Shown: positions 15,549 through 24,708, numbered from the whole stretch's first letter. The stretch: DNA of 63,737 bases, filler included, from Guillardia theta CCMP2712 (GCF_000315625.1; 5 parts of 5 records of this genome joined end to end with filler, not necessarily neighbours in it), one strand, 5' to 3'. Notes: generated by a model from the letters alone, not told the origin. Made by a program: numbers and translations.

Positions 15549-15777
15549 GGTTTAGGGTTTAGGGTTTAGGGTTTAGGAGGCGCCGTTATTTTCGGCAGGC
15601 GCCGTTTAGGGTTTAGGGTTTAGAAACCAGGTGTGTCGGGGCCGAGGAAGCAACACAAGTAAAGCACGGACGACCCAGGCCAAGGCCGGCGGAGGAAACT
15701 GCCTGAGGCCGGGGAAGACCAGCACAGCAGAAGCACGGCTGCCATAGGGCCCAGCCAAGTCGGGTTTAGGGTTTAGG
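15549..15777 (+). repeat. Interstitial telomere-type (TTTAGGG)n tracts
   Basis: Tracts at 15549-15577 (~4 units), 15604-15623 (~3) and 15762-15777 (~2), plus a fourth at 16485-16499 (~2). Confidence 0.9.
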
Positions 15778-16004
15778 AGGCGCCGTTATTTTCGGCAGGC
15801 GCCGTTATTTTCGGCAGGCGCCGTTATTTTCGGCAGGCGCCGTTATTTTCGGCAGGCGCCGTTATTTTCGGCAGGCGCCGTTATTTTCGGCAGGCGCCGT
15901 TATTTTCGGCAGGCGCCGTTATTTTCGGCAGGCGCCGTTATTTTCGGCAGGCGCCGTTATTTTCGGCAGGCGCCGTTATTTTCGGCAGGCGCCGTTATTT
16001 TCAG
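15778..16004 (+). repeat. 19-bp minisatellite (AGGCGCCGTTATTTTCGGC), ~12 copies
   Basis: Perfect period-19 array. An extra ~1.4 copies lie at 15578-15605, also directly after a telomere tract. The last copy ends TTATTTTCAG. Confidence 0.95.
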
Positions 16005-16051
16005 GTGTAGGGGAAGCCGCCAGGGCGCCAAGGAAGCTGCAAGCGAGAGGT

Positions 16052-16492
16052 TTGTATACTTCAAATAGCTTTCTAAGTATGGTTCTTCAGTATGATGAAA
16101 ATGTTCGCAACCTGCTGTATCGGAGATCATGCCAATACACGCAGAGCGGACTTGTGGATGCCTCTGTCCTCGAAGCTGATCTCGTCGAGAGGGTGAAGAG
16201 CTTCGCGAAGCGTTATCCGAACAGCAGGACAGCCCAGGCTTGCAAGGCTGTGGAGGGATGCACCCCCGACGCTATCGCAGAAGCCATCCGCTCGACATGT
16301 CAGCAGGCACGACGTGAGCTTCTGCAAGAAGCGATGGCTGGATGGAGTGACGCATCCAGAGAGTGGTTTATGCAGCAGATTGAAGAAGCCAAGAAAGAGA
16401 AGGTCGAGACATACACCGCCTCAGCAGGCAACGAGGTGACTTCCTTCATCTTCATGACTCTCCTGGGCATCTCCTCGGTGTATGGGGTTTAG
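16052..16492 (+). CDS. Short 5' ORF of the retroelement (ORF1-like or N-terminal polyprotein fragment), unknown function
   Basis: 146-codon ORF with helical-looking composition. Its TAG stop is supplied by a TTTAGGG tract. Confidence 0.5.
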   Translation: MYTSNSFLSMVLQYDENVRNLLYRRSCQYTQSGLVDASVLEADLVERVKSFAKRYPNSRTAQACKAVEGCTPDAIAEAIRSTCQQARRELLQEAMAGWSDASREWFMQQIEEAKKEKVETYTASAGNEVTSFIFMTLLGISSVYGV

Positions 16493-16498
16493 GGTTTA

Positions 16499-16626
16499 GA
16501 TAGGGGAGATCCCCTGGAGTCTACGATAGGGGAGATCCCCTGGAGTCTATATAGGGGAGATCCCCTGGAGTCTACGATAGGGGAGATCCCCTGGAGTCTT
16601 GATAGGGGAGATCCCCTGGAGTCTAC
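16499..16626 (+). repeat. Five-copy 25/26-bp hairpin tandem repeat (GATAGGGGAGATCCCCTGGAGTCTAC)
   Basis: Unit lengths alternate 26/25 bp. Each unit contains the inverted repeat AGGGG-AGAT-CCCCT. Confidence 0.9.
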
Positions 16627-17021
16627 GGGAAAACAATAGAGAGTACGGAGCAGCGGCGCTGCTCAACTCAGGAGAAGATGGATTTCTCTCTGAGGACGTT
16701 ATGGAGGCATTAATCGTTGAGGTAAACCGCAATTTAGAACCAGCGGAAGACAGATTTCAAATAGCATGGCCCCAAGGCACGAGGTATGCCAGCGAGCAAA
16801 CTAGAAACCAATTTGGGCTGCAGAGAGGGACCATTGTTCTCCCGAGAATAGTAGCGGGTTTGAGAGATCAGGAGGGAAGGGCACGGAGAGCAAAACGACT
16901 GCTAGCCGGGGCAGCTCAACCATTCTTATTCCCTTGCGTAGAGAACGGCAATCATTGGATCCTAATCGTGGCAGATGCTAACACAAAAAGAATACACATC
17001 GTCGACTCGCTTAGCCCTTGA
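16599..17021 (+). CDS. N-terminal part of Ulp1/C48 SUMO-protease-like domain of the retroelement
   Basis: GFLSEDVMEALI...FLFPCVENGNHWILIVADANTKRIHIVDSL provides the catalytic His and Asp. The Gln/Cys motif QQTDGYNCGIFVL lies in the +1 frame ORF (~17191-17232). Confidence 0.85.
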   Translation: MIGEIPWSLRENNREYGAAALLNSGEDGFLSEDVMEALIVEVNRNLEPAEDRFQIAWPQGTRYASEQTRNQFGLQRGTIVLPRIVAGLRDQEGRARRAKRLLAGAAQPFLFPCVENGNHWILIVADANTKRIHIVDSLSP

Positions 17022-20000
17022 GAGAGACCTGGGGACAGTCAGAAGCCAAAGGGAGGCACAGTTTCAATTGGGGGGCGCACAGCGAATGGACCTAGCATCA
17101 CTCATGGCGACGATTATCACCGAGGCAATTAGCGATCAACAAGAACACTGTGACGACACGGCATGGAGGGCATGTGTGTCAACTGGGCTGCAACAAACAG
17201 ACGGCTACAATTGTGGAATTTTCGTTTTGCTGCATCTGCTGCTGATCGCAAAGACACGAAGGAAAACACAACAACAAGATATCTTCAACACAGGGAGGCA
17301 ACAAGGCGTCCCCCCCCATCAGCAATGGCTCATGCGAACAAGACATCTGCTGCTGGATGGGCTCTGGGGGGGGGGTATGGAACATGTGCACACGCGATGC
17401 ATCTGCAGAGCTCTACAGCACGCGCAAGATACAGGTTACAAGGAATGGCAAGCTGCAGAGCTCACCATGGAACGTATACCTAACCGGATGGAAAGGCGAG
17501 AAGACGGCCAAGAACGCGCAGGCGATCTACAGGCGACCCAGGCATCTGAAGATGCACGGCTACAGGAGAGATTGGAAGACGAGCAGGAGCAAGGAGGACA
17601 AGGATCAACGAAGCTCATAGCCGCGACGGTCCTGCAACTACAAGACAGGTCAGCACAGGTAGACATCCTGACGTCCTCCCCTCCCCCACCTCCTGCTTCA
17701 TGCCCCGTCTCTCCACTCCAGCCACCTCCTCCGCCACAAGCAATGCACACAGCGCCAATCTCGAAGAATGACAAGGAGACAAGGGGAGAGGAGGAGCTAC
17801 CAGGCCCAACAAAGATGCAAGATGGGAACTCGTCTCACCTTCAATGGGCAACGGGGGCGGAGGAGCAAATCCTGCCAGCAGGCAGCAAACCATCCACGAC
17901 TACCACCGACAGGTCAGTGCAATCAGCATGGGTGGAAACGCACAGGAAGGACAACGCCCCTGGCAACATCATTTCTCACAATGTCAATGGATGCAGTCAA
18001 TTTGTGCTGAAACACATCCTAGGATACCTGATTGAAACATATCAACCAACAGTCGTGCTACTTCAAGAAGTTTTGGTCGGGGGAAAACGAAAGGAGGCAG
18101 ATCTCCGAATGATGATCAAGAAAGAATGGGGATGCTACCGAGTGTTCATGACGAAAGGTGCAGGGGAGGGGAGAAAGGGTAAGAGCGATCTTCGCCTTGT
18201 GACGCTCGTACATGCGGACCTTCTCCCTCGTCCCTCCCCCCTGCTCTGCCGCCGCGCTGACATGTTGGAAGAGCAGAATCTCCAAAAAAGAATACAACTT
18301 TTACAGATCGGAAAAAAAGAACCGATAGGGATCTGTAACATCCACTTTCCTACTGCAGCGCAAGGGGAGGATCAAGACGAGATGTGGGCAACGCTGAGCC
18401 AGATGCTCAAGACGGAGCCAAGTGTCAAGCTCACCATCATAGGAGGCGACTTCAATGCATCTCGACAACATCCAGAGATCCTCATGAGAGTCGGATACGG
18501 GAGCAAATCGAGTGTGCACCGTGCAGATGAGAGAATGGAACAAGGCTTAAACGAACTTGGACGATCACAGATGGTCACTTGCGAGAAGATGAGCAGAAGC
18601 AGCACGCACTTCACCTTCTCCACATGGTACAAGCAGGGCCATCACCAAGCAAAACTGGATCATGTCTTTGCATTACATCATCCATCTCGCACAGTAAGCT
18701 TAATATCGCAGACCGCAGAGGATTGCATCATAGGAGCCGCAGTCGACCACAGAGCACTTGTAGTGAATGTGAGCTCTCTCGATGCTGAGGGTAAGCAAGC
18801 CATCCCAAAGATTGAAATCCTCCCGCAAAGGAGGGATCGAGAAGCAACCCCTCGACGAAAGAAAAGGGTGGTCGAGATGGACAAGCTATCGGGAAGACTA
18901 GGCGTGGAATGGGCAATAGCACTTGATGAGAAGATAAAAGCGGCACAAGCTCTACATCAAGATTGCGACATTCTCGAATTGATAACAACAGCCCTCCCCA
19001 TCAAGGAAATTCCGCTACGAGGCTCCAGCGGGAAAAGACATGCATCCAAAACTCAAATGGATCTGAAGCGAAAAATCAAGCAACTTCACAAGGACTTAAG
19101 AAACGCTTCAGAAATTCCAGACTTTATTGATCGCGCACACAAGGAGTCGAGCTTACATGCAGAAATAAGAGAGAATATGACCAAATTCAAGGAGATCTGC
19201 GCAGCACAAGACCAAGAGATATTCCTGAAAATATGCGAAGAACGAAGAAGACGCTTGGGCACGATAGGGAGTAAAGAGTCTCAAAATGCAATGGGCAAGA
19301 AGTCAGACTTTAAGCCCAAAGCCCCAATGCTGAGTCAACTGCCAGAGAAGTGCCACCCAAACACAATCGAACTTACGTCATGGAGAGATCTCCAGCCAGC
19401 GATGCAACAGCCGGAGACAGCATATCTTCAAGAACTGAACCCGTTAATCGAGACATTCCTCCAGAGCAACTCCAAAGAATCAAGCAAAACCTTTTGGAAT
19501 GCAAGACATCAAACCATGCTGCACGTCGAGGTTCTCGGGGCGAGGAACCAGGCAACACTGACACAAAAGCTGTTCATAACTCTGGCGCCTGCACACGCAA
19601 TCGTACCCATCATCCGAGGACTGATCACACAGCCAGGAGGGTGGCGCCTGGAAGGATACAAAAACATCGAGCAATTCCTCCCCATGAGATTGGCAAGAGA
19701 TCTAGAAGATGAAACCCACACGGCAACCTTCTTTGCAGTCAACGGATGTACCATGAACGGAACCTGTGCAAGAGCTGAATGTCAAACAAAAGGACGACTG
19801 ATCCCGTTATATGACAAAAGCCAGAAAAACGAAGAAGCATCAATCCTCTTCTTCTGCAAAAGCTGTCAATCACTGACTTCCGTCAAACCACCGGACTTCG
19901 AACCCCCAGAGCAAATCAATCAACACCCGACCAGGGATGTAGAGATAGCTTACCCGCTGGAGCCAGGCGAGATCCAAGTATGGATTCAAAAACTGGCCAA

Positions 20001-23000
20001 CCGGAAAGCAGCAGGCATGGATTTGATTTCAAACGAGATTCTGAAAGCTCTGCCTGACAGTGCAAAGGAGGAAATAGGCAAGACAATCAGCCGAGCCTTG
20101 ATCGGAGACAAGCAAACACTAAAGATGCTCGCGAGAGTTAGGCTCCTCCCAAAAAATGAGATATGTCACGTCTTGGAGAATCAAAGACCTATATGCGTCC
20201 TCTCCTCGATAACGAGGATCTTCCAGGCAGTCATAGCGCACAGACTGGCAAAAGCTGCTGAAAAACATAAGCTACTCACTAACAACCAGGAAGGTTTCAG
20301 ACCAGAGGGAGGAACGATCAGGCAGGGTCATCGGCTACTCAACATCATCGAGGAGGCTCAGAGTAATCAACACGACCTCATCCTGCTGTACCTCGACTTT
20401 GCAAACTTCTTTAACAATGTGGCAGTCGAATCCATTGCAAAAATCATGGAAGTATACGGCTTTCACCAGTGTGATGTAGACGTCGCAATCAGTTGTAGCC
20501 AAGGGATAGCGCTGCAAATTCAGACAGAGAGGTTCGAAACAACAGCCATCCCACTTCTCAGAGGATTACCCCAAGGCAGCCCCGCAAGTCCGCCAAAAAC
20601 AAATCTTCTGCTAAGCATCTTGTCCAAACAGCTCGATCAACAACAAGACGAGATTGCAACTCAACACCCTAATAATCTGTCATTTGCAGACGACCTTGTC
20701 CTGATAGCACATTCAGTGAGAGAGATGAAAACGCTTGTCCAAGTGGTAGAGCGATTCTGTCGATGGAGTGGATTAGAACTGAACACGAAGAAATCTGAAA
20801 TCACCAGCTTTGATTATCGGCTAAGAAGGGAGATCCCAGGAACACAGACCATCAAGTTCTTCGACAAGGAGTTTGTGAACCTACCACCGACGAAATGGTT
20901 CAAATATCTAGGGATCCGGATCAGCTTGTGGAGACCAGGAGGAAGAGGCAACAAGGCGCACACCTGCCCCTTCACGTGGGGGGAGAAAGAACACATCTTG
21001 GAGAAGACAAAAGAACTGACAAAGCTGATTGAATCATCTGCTTACTCGGCAGCCCAAAAATATTACCTGGTGAAGGTAGGCATCGTCAATATATTTAGAT
21101 ACTCGGCGGTACTGGTGAGCTGGTCTTGGTCAGACTTACAAACCTTAGATACCCTCTGGACCAGAGCATTCAAAAGAGCTATGGGATTGAGCAAGAGTAC
21201 AAGCAACGCTATCTTTCACCTACCTTGGGACAAAGGAGGCCTCCAACTCCCCCATCCAGCACCCATCTTGGGAAGGGCGGCGATTCGGTATCTAGAGAAA
21301 GAAACGAATAAGAAATGCAGGGTGGATGATGATATCAAAAGCAGTCTGATCCACAAACTAACATCATGGTGCAACCAATGGGGGTGTCAAACAATAAACC
21401 AGCTACAACGAGAAATCAGATCGGGCAGACTCAAAGAGAACGAAGAGATAAGAGGACCGGAGAGACTCGCAATCTGGATAGCGGAAAAAATGCAGACCAC
21501 CATCAGTTGGGAAATGATTGAAAGCAAGATGAAACCGGGGACAATAGCCATCTTACATGACCTGGAGGACAAGATGCTCTCAGAAGAAAACTCCCTGCGG
21601 TCCGGAGAAAACTCCCTACCTACATCTCCTGCTCGGCAAGGCTGGGAGAGTTTTGCAAAGGCATGGAGACTACTGCCCCAAGTAGGCTTCCACTCCATGA
21701 CAAGTATCTTACCCGTCCCAGATACCGAGGGCATCTCCCTGCACCTGCCCATCCGACTCTGGCCATTCCCAAAGCAAAGGGAACAAGCAGAAGAAATCCT
21801 TGCACAATATCTGCAAGCGAATGTCATCTGGACAAAACTCGGACTTGAGCAGGCAGGAACAGGGAAGAGAAGAAGGCCAGCCAGGGAGGAGGGGAAGCCT
21901 CTAAACAAGAGAAGGAAAGGAAAAAGGGAGGCTAGCCCACATGAACTTCAGCCACACAAGAAACTAGCCAGACCGGACCAAGGGAGAGAGGAAACGAATA
22001 CGAAGGCTTGTACCCGGGTAATTTTGAGGCGGTGGCTCCAACATGACCCCACCTGTTATGATGAAGGAGGGAATCCGCAAGAAAGATTCTGTTACACTAC
22101 AAGCAATATACCTTTCAAAGTTCAAGGGAACATAGCCATCTTTGAGCGATCTCAAATTGAAGAAAGCAAGACCATGGATCCACCAATAGAATGGTTGGAA
22201 GCGTCACTGGACTCGGCTCCCTTCGCATCTGCAACAAGGGAAGAGGACGGTAATAACCGAAGAGACTGCAATCAAAGCATCCATCTGTTGCTGGAAATAG
22301 TTAATGCATTGGACGACGGCGAAACAGAAGCTACAGCATGGTGGCAACATCTCGAGGAGGTAGTATCAGAGGTTCGCCAAGAAACAACACAACCATTGGC
22401 ATACGAGTTTTTACAACATCTAGCAGAGATTACAGCATGCGACATCAGTACATTTCGTAACTGGCCTACCCTACACACACATCCCCAGGCTCTGGACAAG
22501 AAGAGAGCAAGGGAACCGCACAGAGTGGTGGTTTGGATGGACAAACAAAAGAGATTTCGTGAACAAATCCTGGATACAATGCATGTCATTCTGATAGGAT
22601 GGAAGAATAACATTGATGAGATACCAGAAGGTTTTGAAATTATCAGCCGGGTCCCGAAAGGCGCTCAAATAGCTTATGCAGCAAACTTCTGGCAATCAGG
22701 GAATAGGTGTTTGATGAAGACTGCAGAGGAGTTATGGATACTAGTTAGGCACACACTCCCAACATACTTACGAGTCCAGCTTCAGGACAACATCCTCCCA
22801 ACGTATGAGGAGCTGTGTAACAGACGAAGGGATCAGATCCAGCCGTCCAGCGATCATCAAGGCGGAAGGCATCATCATCAAGGCGGAAGGCATTTCACAG
22901 CAGCTATTGAAGGAGACATCATGCAGGGCAGAAAAAACAGATCCATGCGAGTAGGATATGTTCTCCAACAAAAAGAGATGACGTCAGGAGGAGGGATGAA

Positions 23001-23439
23001 AATCAATGGGAAGTGCAGCATCATCCGAGCGAACACAATCGCAATCGGTTTACTTCTGCAACATGTCCTTGAGGAAGGAATACAGATCAAAAGGGGAAAT
23101 CAAGTCACAATAATGTACCAGTCCACACGTTTCCACCGCTTTATGACAAATACGTTGCGAATGGATACCATGCGATACGAAGACGAACTGCTGGAGGACT
23201 TACATGATCGGTTACTCACTTGCATGAGGAAACTCGAAGGGAGGGGAATCAGGATCCGACTCCAACTAGCAAAAGAATCTCATAGACACATTCAAGAGGC
23301 AAAGGAAATGGCCAAGCAAGCAAAACAAACATTTGCCTCGGGATGGGAGAAAGCAATCTACGATAGTCCAATGGAATTCATCATTGCAGGAGAAGAAAAT
23401 CCTACATCAGGATTCGATCGCTTGAAGAAATGGGACTAA
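16975..23439 (+). CDS. Retrotransposon polyprotein: Ulp1 C-terminus, AP endonuclease, reverse transcriptase, degenerate RNase H
   Basis: APE (~17960-18780): ISHNVNG, VLLQEV, NIHFP, IIGGDFNA, FTF, KLDHVF, DHRAL. RT (~19970-20925): KAAGMD, RPICVLS, QEGFRP, YLDFANFFNNV, RGLPQGSPASP, FADDLVL, GLELNTKKS, FKYLGI; then KGGLQL. RNase H-like segment ~22890-23340. Confidence 0.95.
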   Translation: MLTQKEYTSSTRLALERDLGTVRSQREAQFQLGGAQRMDLASLMATIITEAISDQQEHCDDTAWRACVSTGLQQTDGYNCGIFVLLHLLLIAKTRRKTQQQDIFNTGRQQGVPPHQQWLMRTRHLLLDGLWGGGMEHVHTRCICRALQHAQDTGYKEWQAAELTMERIPNRMERREDGQERAGDLQATQASEDARLQERLEDEQEQGGQGSTKLIAATVLQLQDRSAQVDILTSSPPPPPASCPVSPLQPPPPPQAMHTAPISKNDKETRGEEELPGPTKMQDGNSSHLQWATGAEEQILPAGSKPSTTTTDRSVQSAWVETHRKDNAPGNIISHNVNGCSQFVLKHILGYLIETYQPTVVLLQEVLVGGKRKEADLRMMIKKEWGCYRVFMTKGAGEGRKGKSDLRLVTLVHADLLPRPSPLLCRRADMLEEQNLQKRIQLLQIGKKEPIGICNIHFPTAAQGEDQDEMWATLSQMLKTEPSVKLTIIGGDFNASRQHPEILMRVGYGSKSSVHRADERMEQGLNELGRSQMVTCEKMSRSSTHFTFSTWYKQGHHQAKLDHVFALHHPSRTVSLISQTAEDCIIGAAVDHRALVVNVSSLDAEGKQAIPKIEILPQRRDREATPRRKKRVVEMDKLSGRLGVEWAIALDEKIKAAQALHQDCDILELITTALPIKEIPLRGSSGKRHASKTQMDLKRKIKQLHKDLRNASEIPDFIDRAHKESSLHAEIRENMTKFKEICAAQDQEIFLKICEERRRRLGTIGSKESQNAMGKKSDFKPKAPMLSQLPEKCHPNTIELTSWRDLQPAMQQPETAYLQELNPLIETFLQSNSKESSKTFWNARHQTMLHVEVLGARNQATLTQKLFITLAPAHAIVPIIRGLITQPGGWRLEGYKNIEQFLPMRLARDLEDETHTATFFAVNGCTMNGTCARAECQTKGRLIPLYDKSQKNEEASILFFCKSCQSLTSVKPPDFEPPEQINQHPTRDVEIAYPLEPGEIQVWIQKLANRKAAGMDLISNEILKALPDSAKEEIGKTISRALIGDKQTLKMLARVRLLPKNEICHVLENQRPICVLSSITRIFQAVIAHRLAKAAEKHKLLTNNQEGFRPEGGTIRQGHRLLNIIEEAQSNQHDLILLYLDFANFFNNVAVESIAKIMEVYGFHQCDVDVAISCSQGIALQIQTERFETTAIPLLRGLPQGSPASPPKTNLLLSILSKQLDQQQDEIATQHPNNLSFADDLVLIAHSVREMKTLVQVVERFCRWSGLELNTKKSEITSFDYRLRREIPGTQTIKFFDKEFVNLPPTKWFKYLGIRISLWRPGGRGNKAHTCPFTWGEKEHILEKTKELTKLIESSAYSAAQKYYLVKVGIVNIFRYSAVLVSWSWSDLQTLDTLWTRAFKRAMGLSKSTSNAIFHLPWDKGGLQLPHPAPILGRAAIRYLEKETNKKCRVDDDIKSSLIHKLTSWCNQWGCQTINQLQREIRSGRLKENEEIRGPERLAIWIAEKMQTTISWEMIESKMKPGTIAILHDLEDKMLSEENSLRSGENSLPTSPARQGWESFAKAWRLLPQVGFHSMTSILPVPDTEGISLHLPIRLWPFPKQREQAEEILAQYLQANVIWTKLGLEQAGTGKRRRPAREEGKPLNKRRKGKREASPHELQPHKKLARPDQGREETNTKACTRVILRRWLQHDPTCYDEGGNPQERFCYTTSNIPFKVQGNIAIFERSQIEESKTMDPPIEWLEASLDSAPFASATREEDGNNRRDCNQSIHLLLEIVNALDDGETEATAWWQHLEEVVSEVRQETTQPLAYEFLQHLAEITACDISTFRNWPTLHTHPQALDKKRAREPHRVVVWMDKQKRFREQILDTMHVILIGWKNNIDEIPEGFEIISRVPKGAQIAYAANFWQSGNRCLMKTAEELWILVRHTLPTYLRVQLQDNILPTYEELCNRRRDQIQPSSDHQGGRHHHQGGRHFTAAIEGDIMQGRKNRSMRVGYVLQQKEMTSGGGMKINGKCSIIRANTIAIGLLLQHVLEEGIQIKRGNQVTIMYQSTRFHRFMTNTLRMDTMRYEDELLEDLHDRLLTCMRKLEGRGIRIRLQLAKESHRHIQEAKEMAKQAKQTFASGWEKAIYDSPMEFIIAGEENPTSGFDRLKKWD

Positions 23440-24254
23440 CAGACAATGGTGGCAAGGATTCGAGCGGGAGACCTCACCTTGACAGAGAAATGACAGAGAA
23501 ATTCATGCTCGAAATGCATGTGGGAAGAGATTTACTAGGGAGAGGGTTCAAACAATGCGAAGGGTCAGTTACGCGAACAGCTATCCAAGCGATCACCTTC
23601 TCAGCACCGACGAGGAAGAAGCTCTTTCAATGGGGGAAGACTAACTCACCATGTTGTCCTCACTGTCCAGACCGAGAAGAAACCTGGGGTCATGTTCAGC
23701 TAGCGTGCAAGCAGTTCCAAGATATGATTCAAAAAGCACACAATGAAGTCATGAAGAAGATCAAGGTAAGACTGCAGCAGAGTTGGAGGAAACAAAGGGT
23801 ACAGGTCAATTCATGGTGGGACACCCCAATACGCAGCGTGATGGAAGCGATGGGGACTTCAATGCACCGAGAAGGGCACTGGATACCTGACGGTTGCTGC
23901 TACTTTGCAAGCATCAAACGCATTGTCCTCATCGAATTTGCAAGGACATCGGAGTATGACGGAGTCGAACAAACAAGCCTGGAATGCCTGAAGAAGAAAT
24001 TTCAGGAAAAGGAAGAGAAATATGCCCCCCTACGAGCAGAAATCACAGCTTTGCTACCTGACCATGAAGTTGAACAAGCAACATTCATAGCAGGAGTGAA
24101 AGGATCGATCATGGAAAGGGAATGGCATGAGAATTTCAGGGTGCTAAGGGTGGAAGACACGGAATGGGAAGGCATCAAGACAGCAGCAATCAAGCAACTG
24201 CTGGTGGTGCAACACATGCTATGGACGGCAAGAAGGGGAAGCGAGTCGACCTAG
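23430..24254 (+). CDS. C-terminal CCHC zinc knuckle plus restriction-like (PD-(D/E)xK) endonuclease of the retroelement, -1 frame relative to the main ORF
   Basis: CPHCPDREETWGHVQLAC, KAHNEV, IPDG...IVLIEF, KFQEKEEKYAPL, FIAGVKG are typical R2/RLE-type C-terminal motifs. Confidence 0.9.
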   Translation: MGLTDNGGKDSSGRPHLDREMTEKFMLEMHVGRDLLGRGFKQCEGSVTRTAIQAITFSAPTRKKLFQWGKTNSPCCPHCPDREETWGHVQLACKQFQDMIQKAHNEVMKKIKVRLQQSWRKQRVQVNSWWDTPIRSVMEAMGTSMHREGHWIPDGCCYFASIKRIVLIEFARTSEYDGVEQTSLECLKKKFQEKEEKYAPLRAEITALLPDHEVEQATFIAGVKGSIMEREWHENFRVLRVEDTEWEGIKTAAIKQLLVVQHMLWTARRGSEST

Positions 24255-24261
24255 TCCGATG

Positions 24262-24528
24262 GGGGGCAGGCGCGGCTCATGGGCAAGCCACCTATGGAGC
24301 ACAGGCAGGGAAGGAAAACAAGCCTAGCACCAAGGAGACAGGCGCAGCTCAGGGTCATGGAGGGAAAAGGTGGGCGACTGGGGGGGGAAGGGGCAGGACA
24401 GGCGCAGCTCATGGTCTTGGAGGGAAGAGGCGGGCGAATGAGGAGGGAAGGGGCAGGACAGACGCAGCTCAAGTCATGGAGGGAAGAGGTGGGCGACTGG
24501 GGGGGGGGAAGGGGCAGGACAGGCGTGG
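24262..24528 (+). repeat. Imperfect ~60-bp G-rich tandem repeats in the element 3' UTR
   Basis: GGGGCAGGACAGGCGCAGCTCA...GGAGGGAAGAGG recurs 3-4 times up to the gap. Confidence 0.75.
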
Positions 24529-24708
24529 ANNNNNNNNNNNNNNNNNNNNNNNNNNNNNNNNNNNNNNNNNNNNTTAATTAATTAANNNNNNNNNNNNNNN
24601 NNNNNNNNNNNNNNNNNNNNNNNNNNNNNCCTCCCTCCTCCTCCTCCTCCTCCTCCTCCTCCTCCTCCTTCTGTCTCATCTTTCTGCTTTTCTCTGAAAT
24701 CTTGCCAA

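Follow-up and report, generated by a model that had tools for sequence, protein, structure and literature searches.

To our knowledge, Dualen is the only group of long interspersed nuclear elements (LINEs) which features both the ancestral restriction-like endonuclease (RLE) and the later endonuclease of the apurinic/apyrimidinic type (APE). Here, a copy of such a dual-endonuclease element is described, which is located at positions 16599–24254 on the plus strand of the window, i.e., the whole stretch of 63,737 nucleotides (filler included) that was analysed; the part studied is the terminal 24.5 kb of contig C245, and the genome searched comprises 87.1 Mb in 669 contigs. The region is very probably a dead copy of an autonomous, telomere-repeat-specific non-long terminal repeat retrotransposon of the cryptophyte Dualen type, which is truncated at its 5' end and carries three lesions breaking its open reading frame (ORF).

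In cryptophytes, Lescot et al. (2015, PMC5029228) described Dualen-1_GCr with SET, C48 peptidase, APE, reverse transcriptase (RT), RNase H, CCHC and RLE domains and termed this combination "unique to the cryptophyte Dualen". The family of the window copy likewise resides in a cryptophyte host, and its polyprotein carries C48, APE, RT, an RNase H-like fold, CCHC and RLE. It differs from the published element by a separate ORF1 and a shorter ORF2 (2573 versus 5287 amino acids (aa)), with no SET match in ORF1 or ORF2 of the full-length elements, and by an RNase H domain devoid of its active site; moreover, telomere-repeat target specificity is not mentioned in PMC5029228. As judged from its domains, the family is a SET-less relative of the cryptophyte Dualen. 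Green-algal Dualen/RandI elements (Kojima and Fujiwara, 2005; Haematococcus proteins P0004 and P0005, with Josephin, APE, RT and RNase_H domains) share APE, RT, an RNase H fold and CCHC/RLE with the family, whereas they possess Josephin instead of C48 and a catalytic RNase H and, according to the literature, feature a single ORF, dispersed insertion and long target duplications. Proteases of the Ulp1 type were reported from the RLE-only NeSL and Utopia elements, of which NeSL-1 and Utopia-1_TSP (nematodes) differ from the family by lacking APE and an RNase H-like domain and by targeting spliced-leader and U2 genes.

Elements dwelling at chromosome ends are known from two insect systems. SART1 and TRAS1 of Bombyx mori (R1 clade) occupy a fixed position and orientation in the telomeric repeats of a telomerase-positive host and occur as 5'-truncated copies, as does the family described here. 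In SART1, a UAAUG overlap was shown to couple the translation of ORF1 and ORF2, and the two ORFs of the present family are joined in the same way. Nevertheless, SART/TRAS belong to another clade, feature APE only, without RLE or protease, and end in a poly(A) tail, compared to (ATA)n here. The HeT-A, TART and TAHRE elements of Drosophila resemble the present family in forming head-to-tail terminal arrays and in the presence of an element encoding ORF1 (Gag) only alongside one encoding RT, but lie in the opposite orientation to the chromosome end, while the family of the window copy retains endonucleases and is accompanied by telomerase repeats.

Domain Architecture

The coding region is colinear and spread over three overlapping frames (16599–17021, 16975–23439 and 23430–24254). 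The sequence-only reading of this DNA had recognized Ulp1, APE, RT, an RNase H-like fold, a CCHC knuckle and RLE in this order, all of which could be confirmed. Among the Pfam profiles, RVT_1 gave 99 bits (E 3.7e-28, window aa 1059–1316), and weak matches to Exo_endo_phos, zf-RVT and Peptidase_C48 were obtained in the window. The RT (19966–21264, plus strand as all domains listed here; Pfam core 20149–20922) features the motifs YLDF, PQG and FADD at 20383–20703. Peptidase_C48 reached 16 bits in the window copy versus 30 bits in the intact copy on contig C23 (gathering cut-off 20.7), because a frameshift splits the domain in the former. The Ulp1 core (16926–17290) was assigned by the Pfam match of the C23 copy and by its catalytic positions, with His at 16953–16955, Asp at 17004–17006 and Gln...Cys at 17191–17214 (Cys at 17212). 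The APE (17968–18762) lies N-terminal to the RT in the same ORF and shows a complete set of catalytic motifs (SHNVNG, LQE, GGDFN, LDH, VDH); it is homologous to the APE of protein P0109 (E 3.5e-12), and its best PDB sequence matches are exonuclease III (E 0.003) and the L1 endonuclease.

The C-terminal 674 aa gave no match to the PDB by sequence, so that a fold search was required to recognize their domains. The AlphaFold2 model of this part, based on 59 homologues, attained a mean predicted local distance difference test score (pLDDT) of 79, with values above 90 over the RLE/last 280 residues. Foldseek related it to R2 proteins (structures 9dou, 9nl2, 8gh6; E 3e-10 to 6e-7), which share the C-terminal zinc knuckle and RLE fold, and to RNase HI (E ~2e-6, template modelling score 0.65–0.75). 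R2 is likewise matched by the RT (E 2.5e-21), but lacks APE, protease and RNase H-like domain and targets the 28S rDNA. In the RNase H-like fold (22891–23328), the alignment revealed D->E, E->N, D->Q and D->E replacements versus the catalytic D-E-D-D of relatives, and the domain is probably inactive. At 23652–24251, model, Foldseek matches and motifs identified a CCHC zinc knuckle and the RLE. The family alignment features a C-x2-C-x8-H-x4-C knuckle (23652–23708) followed by PD (23880–23900), E (23928–23948) and K..KY (24009–24032).

The ratio of non-synonymous to synonymous substitution rates (dN/dS), computed between two intact elements, amounted to 0.17 for the Ulp1 core, 0.29 for APE, 0.07 for RT, 0.09 for the RNase H-like domain and 0.14 for RLE (0.11–0.14 for knuckle and RLE together), with one linker at 0.76. 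The low values in Ulp1, APE and RLE show that the protease and both nucleases are maintained by selection, and that of the RNase H-like domain shows a retention of the fold despite the degenerate active site. The C23 copy features a single 1461-aa frame from upstream of Ulp1 through APE into RT, and the copies on C90 (2261 aa) and C5 possess an uninterrupted frame which links APE or RT with CCHC, RLE and the stop; two metagenome contigs contain an intact ORF2 of 2573 aa. A nested foreign element as the source of the Ulp1 or RLE part, which had been named as a possible objection, was thus ruled out by single ORFs spanning both.

The Complete Element

The complete element measures ~10.5 kb and was seen on two metagenome contigs of ~10.7 kb (L027 and L028), the elements of which are 83–86% identical to the window family. 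From 5' to 3', it consists of a telomere tract, tandem repeats of 19–20 bp, ORF1 (712–713 aa), the sequence TAATG, ORF2 (2573–2575 aa), the 3' untranslated region (UTR), a terminal motif, (ATA)n and TTTAGGG repeats. The ORF1 stop and the ORF2 start overlap as TAATG, and the same TAATG is found in the genome's own copies. The domain order within ORF2 is Ulp1/C48, APE, RT, RNase H-like, CCHC and RLE. The 3' UTR features G-rich repeats of 60 bp, the conserved terminal motif TCTAATAAACTCA[A/C] and the (ATA)n tail. For ORF1, neither a Pfam family nor a lead in the ESM Atlas was found; its AlphaFold2 model was poor (pLDDT 48), and Foldseek returned mostly RRM proteins with weak E-values (4e-4 to 0.1), which gives no more than a hint of RRM-like domains in the modelled protein. 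In the genome, more than 25 copies with 85–99% identity to 16599–24254 occur. Near-identical copies (60–80% of sampled 31-mers) further occur in several metagenome runs of 2023 (freshwater, aquatic, runoff) and in runs from the organisms coded A and B.

Telomere Association

The window copy directly follows a telomere tract at its 5' junction, and each complete or 5'-truncated copy examined sits between TTTAGGG tracts. The complete 3' junction reads ...ATAATAATA followed by GGGTTTAGGG in C183, L027 and L028. The sense strand of the element is the G-rich strand, with the 3' end towards the chromosome or contig end. LINE copies gather at contig ends in the same polarity, and the ends of contigs C149, C28, C4 and C321 consist of repeated units of telomere tract and element in one orientation. 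In a junction survey which covered every telomere tract in the loci fetched, the tracts were followed downstream either by the 5' ends of full-length elements, which belong to several families with family-specific 19–20-bp repeats, or by many different 5'-truncation points. Upstream, the tracts were mostly preceded by the constant 3' motif and (ATA)n, or by (CTA)n in another family, and the remaining ones came after arbitrary 3'-truncation points. The 3' motif had 119 exact matches in the genome versus 0 for a reversed control; its minus-strand sites lie near contig starts and its plus-strand sites near contig ends with a few interior exceptions, and nearly all 3' ends listed run into (ATA)n and then into the telomere repeats GGGTTTAGGG. 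Accordingly, the pattern known from SART/TRAS, i.e., telomeric repeats on both sides, one orientation, a 3' junction that is constant and 5' truncation points that vary, was found for this family, and the arrangement of HeT-A/TART, with the 3' end joined to the chromosome and the 5' end facing the terminus, was not.

A second autonomous family, 43% identical, encodes an ORF1 of 701 aa and an ORF2 of 2481 aa and ends in (CTA)n and a long TTTAGGG tract. Further away in sequence, a relative whose RNase H is catalytic shows a (CAG)n end and lacks telomere repeats. On the metagenome contigs L031 and L032, which carry P0118, such a C48-APE-RT-RNase H-RLE element, its RNase H residues being catalytic, runs into a long (CAG)n tract instead of telomere repeats. 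In this clade, tails of trinucleotide repeats may be a general feature, as perhaps are microsatellite targets.

The LINE forms head-to-tail arrays with a partner family which encodes only a homologue of ORF1. This family A is a ~2.9-kb element with ~95 genome matches, mostly near contig ends, which possesses its own 5' repeats, a 3' end common to the LINE, and no RT. Its single ORF comprises ~700–715 aa from the first ATG (814–856 aa as open frames reaching into the 5' repeats) and is 30% identical to the LINE ORF1 over the whole length (E 1e-88). A shorter derivative, family C, features an ORF of ~327 aa with 92% identity to the C-terminal part of the family A ORF. Since the 3' end is common to LINE and partner, we infer that the LINE mobilises the partner elements in trans. 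Families A and C outnumber the LINE, possess 5' repeats of their own and carry its 3' motif and tail (e.g., L016:648-3089; L015:7615-9001). Contig depth is far higher over 16400–16599 than over the LINE, contig-derived depth being an unreliable measure.

Layout and Lesions of the Window Copy

The terminal array starts at 15549–15777 (plus strand) with (GGTTTAG)n at 15549–15577, 15604–15623 and 15763–15777, interrupted by a 27-bp piece of the partner-element 5' repeat at 15578–15604. A 137-bp piece at 15624–15760, flanked by telomere tracts, matches no element family examined. The DNA upstream of ~15500 has no further copies elsewhere in the genome. A 5' fragment of family A follows at 15778–16484 (plus strand), with 19-bp tandem repeats at 15778–16002 and the ATG at 16079. 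It stops at 16484, where telomere repeats begin, whereas other copies extend beyond this point; the loose end of reads at 16484 carries the same family A continuation as these. The upstream repeat was considered as a target site as well, which was ruled out because it belongs to the separate partner element. Two telomere repeats (GGGTTTAGGGTTTAG, 16485–16498, plus strand) separate the truncated family A fragment from the LINE copy.

The LINE copy opens at its truncated end with five tandem copies of the 26-bp internal element sequence GATAGGGGAGATCCCCTGGAGTCTAC (16499–16627, plus strand), which full-length copies contain only once, and the ORF2 remnant (16599–24254) lacks ORF1 and approximately the first 56 codons of ORF2. 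Upstream of 16598, six other copies go on with a common sequence encoding ORF1, and the loose end of reads at 16598 likewise continues into the full-length upstream sequence. Thus, 16599 as the 5' end of the element was ruled out, with other copies running 2.3–2.6 kb further upstream. The 26-bp unit contains the inverted repeat GGGGAGATCCCC. Another 5'-truncated copy (L025, plus strand, from 5022) opens with two copies of a 16-bp unit. The tandem units at the 5' ends of truncated copies, together with the 19–20-bp repeats of full-length ones, suggest that 5' repeats form at integration, and template slippage or jumping at the 5' end of the RNA may be the way they are made.

In comparison to near-identical copies (99%), a 5-bp deletion at 17014, between the Asp and the Cys of Ulp1, breaks this domain, and a 12-bp deletion at 17397 is in frame. 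Further ORF-breaking lesions lie at 23437–23490 (plus strand), where a TAA stop arises from the loss of 12 bp at 23438 and 11 bp are tandemly duplicated (23480–23490); the C5 and C90 copies read through this part. The 3' UTR (24255–24529, plus strand) is incomplete, its G-rich 60-bp tandem repeats (24337–24525) reaching the contig end, so that the window copy is unassembled over its last ~300 nt, its (ATA)n tail and the telomere tract distal to it. A complete 3' end is present in C183, L027 and L028. In the copy L006 (C35, minus strand), the 3' UTR repeats switch abruptly to an AT-rich sequence ~190 bp past the ORF2 stop; the AT-rich part includes a tRNA-like stretch and may represent a misassembly or a junction with unrelated DNA. 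The telomeric context and the 5' truncation, as well as the degenerate active site of the RNase H-like domain, were absent from the sequence-only reading.

Antisense Transcription

Contigs from four runs belonging to four studies, labelled "RNA?", were aligned to 16400–22399. At least 13 deletions were present in the aligned contigs, all with CT..AC ends on the plus strand, which correspond to GT..AG introns of 45–203 nt on the minus strand, most of them found in all four runs; at least 12 such introns map to 17638–22111. As the contigs are spliced, the element is transcribed at least in antisense (ORF2). A conserved antisense gene was ruled out by a longest ORF of only 134 aa after removal of 12 introns and by splice sites which are only partly conserved between subfamilies. 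In Drosophila, antisense transcripts of TART were shown to contain multiple introns (PMC1636488), representing a further likeness between both systems.

Integration Mechanism and Alternative Explanations

The proposed mechanism starts with one bicistronic RNA. Following the precedent of Bombyx SART1, termination-reinitiation at the UAAUG overlap would yield the ORF2 protein, and the ORF1 protein, probably carrying several RRMs, would coat the RNA. As the sense strand is the G strand, the primer for first-strand synthesis must be a nick in the C-rich strand, which one of the two endonucleases would set at CCC^TAAA or CCCTA^AA. Reverse transcription would then be primed by the 3'-OH thus released on (AUA)n or on a read-through 3' end, and the second endonuclease would cut the G strand. 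Incomplete synthesis would yield the 5' truncations, and erosion of the chromosome end followed by telomerase healing would account for 3'-truncated elements with fresh repeats beyond. The protease is kept by selection, with the polyprotein or SUMO conjugates as candidate substrates; the roles which the sequence-only reading proposed for it are speculative.

Several points weigh against the interpretation as a telomere-repeat-specific Dualen. For APE, Exo_endo_phos reached 20–23 bits, which is below its gathering cut-off of 24.5. The contig stops inside the 3' UTR repeats, so that the window copy's own 3' junction is unassembled, and no intact full-length copy was seen in the genome assembly. 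Repeat-rich contig ends may moreover be collapsed or chimeric. A few copies are located at interior telomere tracts (e.g., C6:355793 and C31:424017, and also C54:320920); such interior 3' ends might mark telomere tracts of the interstitial kind, fusions of ancient date or joins made by the assembly. The proposed nick position and the assignment of either cut to either nuclease derive from junctions which are ambiguous by 2 nt and are thus to be taken as provisional. Likewise, the placement within Dualen is a sequence-based one, which draws on the architecture, the description of 2015 and the green-algal Dualen-like proteins as best hits outside the cryptophytes (RT matches with E 9e-17 by HMMER and E 3e-30 by BLASTP), the RT scores against R2 and L1 being similar.

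The sequence-only reading had considered the domain combination as apparently new, originating from a distinct dual-endonuclease lineage or from a protease-swapped Dualen in a red-plastid alga. Parts of this view hold: the element does combine APE and RLE with a C48/Ulp1 protease where green-algal Dualens (Haematococcus P0004, P0005) have Josephin, its background on Josephin in Dualen and on Ulp1 in NeSL-type elements was correct, and the host is a cryptophyte by its homologues, the closest named protein being one from Hanusia phi (46% identity) and a protein of Guillardia theta CCMP2712 falling in a sister-family cluster. The Josephin of the green-algal proteins and the otherwise RLE-only occurrence of Ulp1 in NeSL and Utopia would indeed suggest a novelty. 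However, the cryptophyte Dualen paper of 2015 (PMC5029228) had been missed, in which the same combination is published, and database proteins are colinear with ORF2, namely P0032 (SET, C48, APE, RT and RLE; E 1.6e-59 for RT and 6e-19 for RLE) and P0099 (C48, RT, RNase_H and RLE). A known family of this architecture was among the findings which the sequence-only reading had named as refuting its view, and such a family exists. A previously unknown combination is therefore very improbable; the architecture had been described before and is, in itself, ordinary.

The arrays might also be explained by endonuclease-independent addition to eroded ends, as for Drosophila HeT-A/TART or terminal Penelope-like elements, instead of nicking in telomere repeats. 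Their terminal, head-to-tail arrangement and an ORF1-only partner as for HeT-A would fit, and the erosion and healing of ends is shown by distally (3') truncated elements beyond which fresh telomere repeats lie. Still, this origin is improbable, as the orientation is opposite to that expected from priming by the G-strand 3' overhang (here, the G strand is the sense strand and the 3' tail points to the end), the catalytic motifs of both endonucleases are retained and the domains are under purifying selection, and telomerase-type repeats are present on both sides of each element. Subtelomeres are further known to recombine, and some element-to-element junctions without telomere repeats (C11, C5) would agree with a segmental duplication or recombination of a few old insertions in place of site-specific retrotransposition. 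Such an origin appears exceedingly improbable in the face of the many different 5'-truncation points, each joined directly to TTTAGGG, the varying lengths of the (ATA)n tails, several families obeying the same rule, copies of 96–99% identity with long open frames, and the same flanks on independent metagenome contigs. Site-specific retrotransposition of a Dualen-type LINE into telomere repeats is consequently preferred.

Implications

In the literature on Dualen or cryptophytes and telomeres, with Repbase outside the search, neither telomere targeting of Dualen nor an ORF1-only partner or a dead RNase H for this group was found described. As far as this search goes, what looks undescribed is a family that inserts only into TTTAGGG repeats and builds chromosome-end arrays together with helper elements. 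Thereby, a protist example is provided of chromosome ends in which telomere repeats are interleaved with dedicated retrotransposons and a Gag-only-like partner. It converges with Drosophila TART/HeT-A in the partner element and the spliced antisense RNA, and with Bombyx SART1 in orientation and UAAUG coupling.

A far-reaching interpretation would be that telomerase builds the chromosome ends jointly with a guild of Dualen LINEs specific for telomere repeats and their ORF1-only partners, so that telomeres laden with retrotransposons would have originated independently for a third time, besides Drosophila and Bombyx. The SUMO-type protease would open the target by acting on telomere or silencing proteins that are SUMOylated, and the elements would aid end protection or length homeostasis instead of being mere tenants; taken as a whole, this is speculative and unlikely. 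SUMO matters at telomeres, and a selectively maintained protease of the SUMO family placed there makes the role of this protease accessible to testing. Moreover, the simple, repetitive and strand-asymmetric target (TTTAGGG/CCCTAAA), in combination with precise junctions, offers a clean system to assign first- and second-strand cleavage to APE or RLE.

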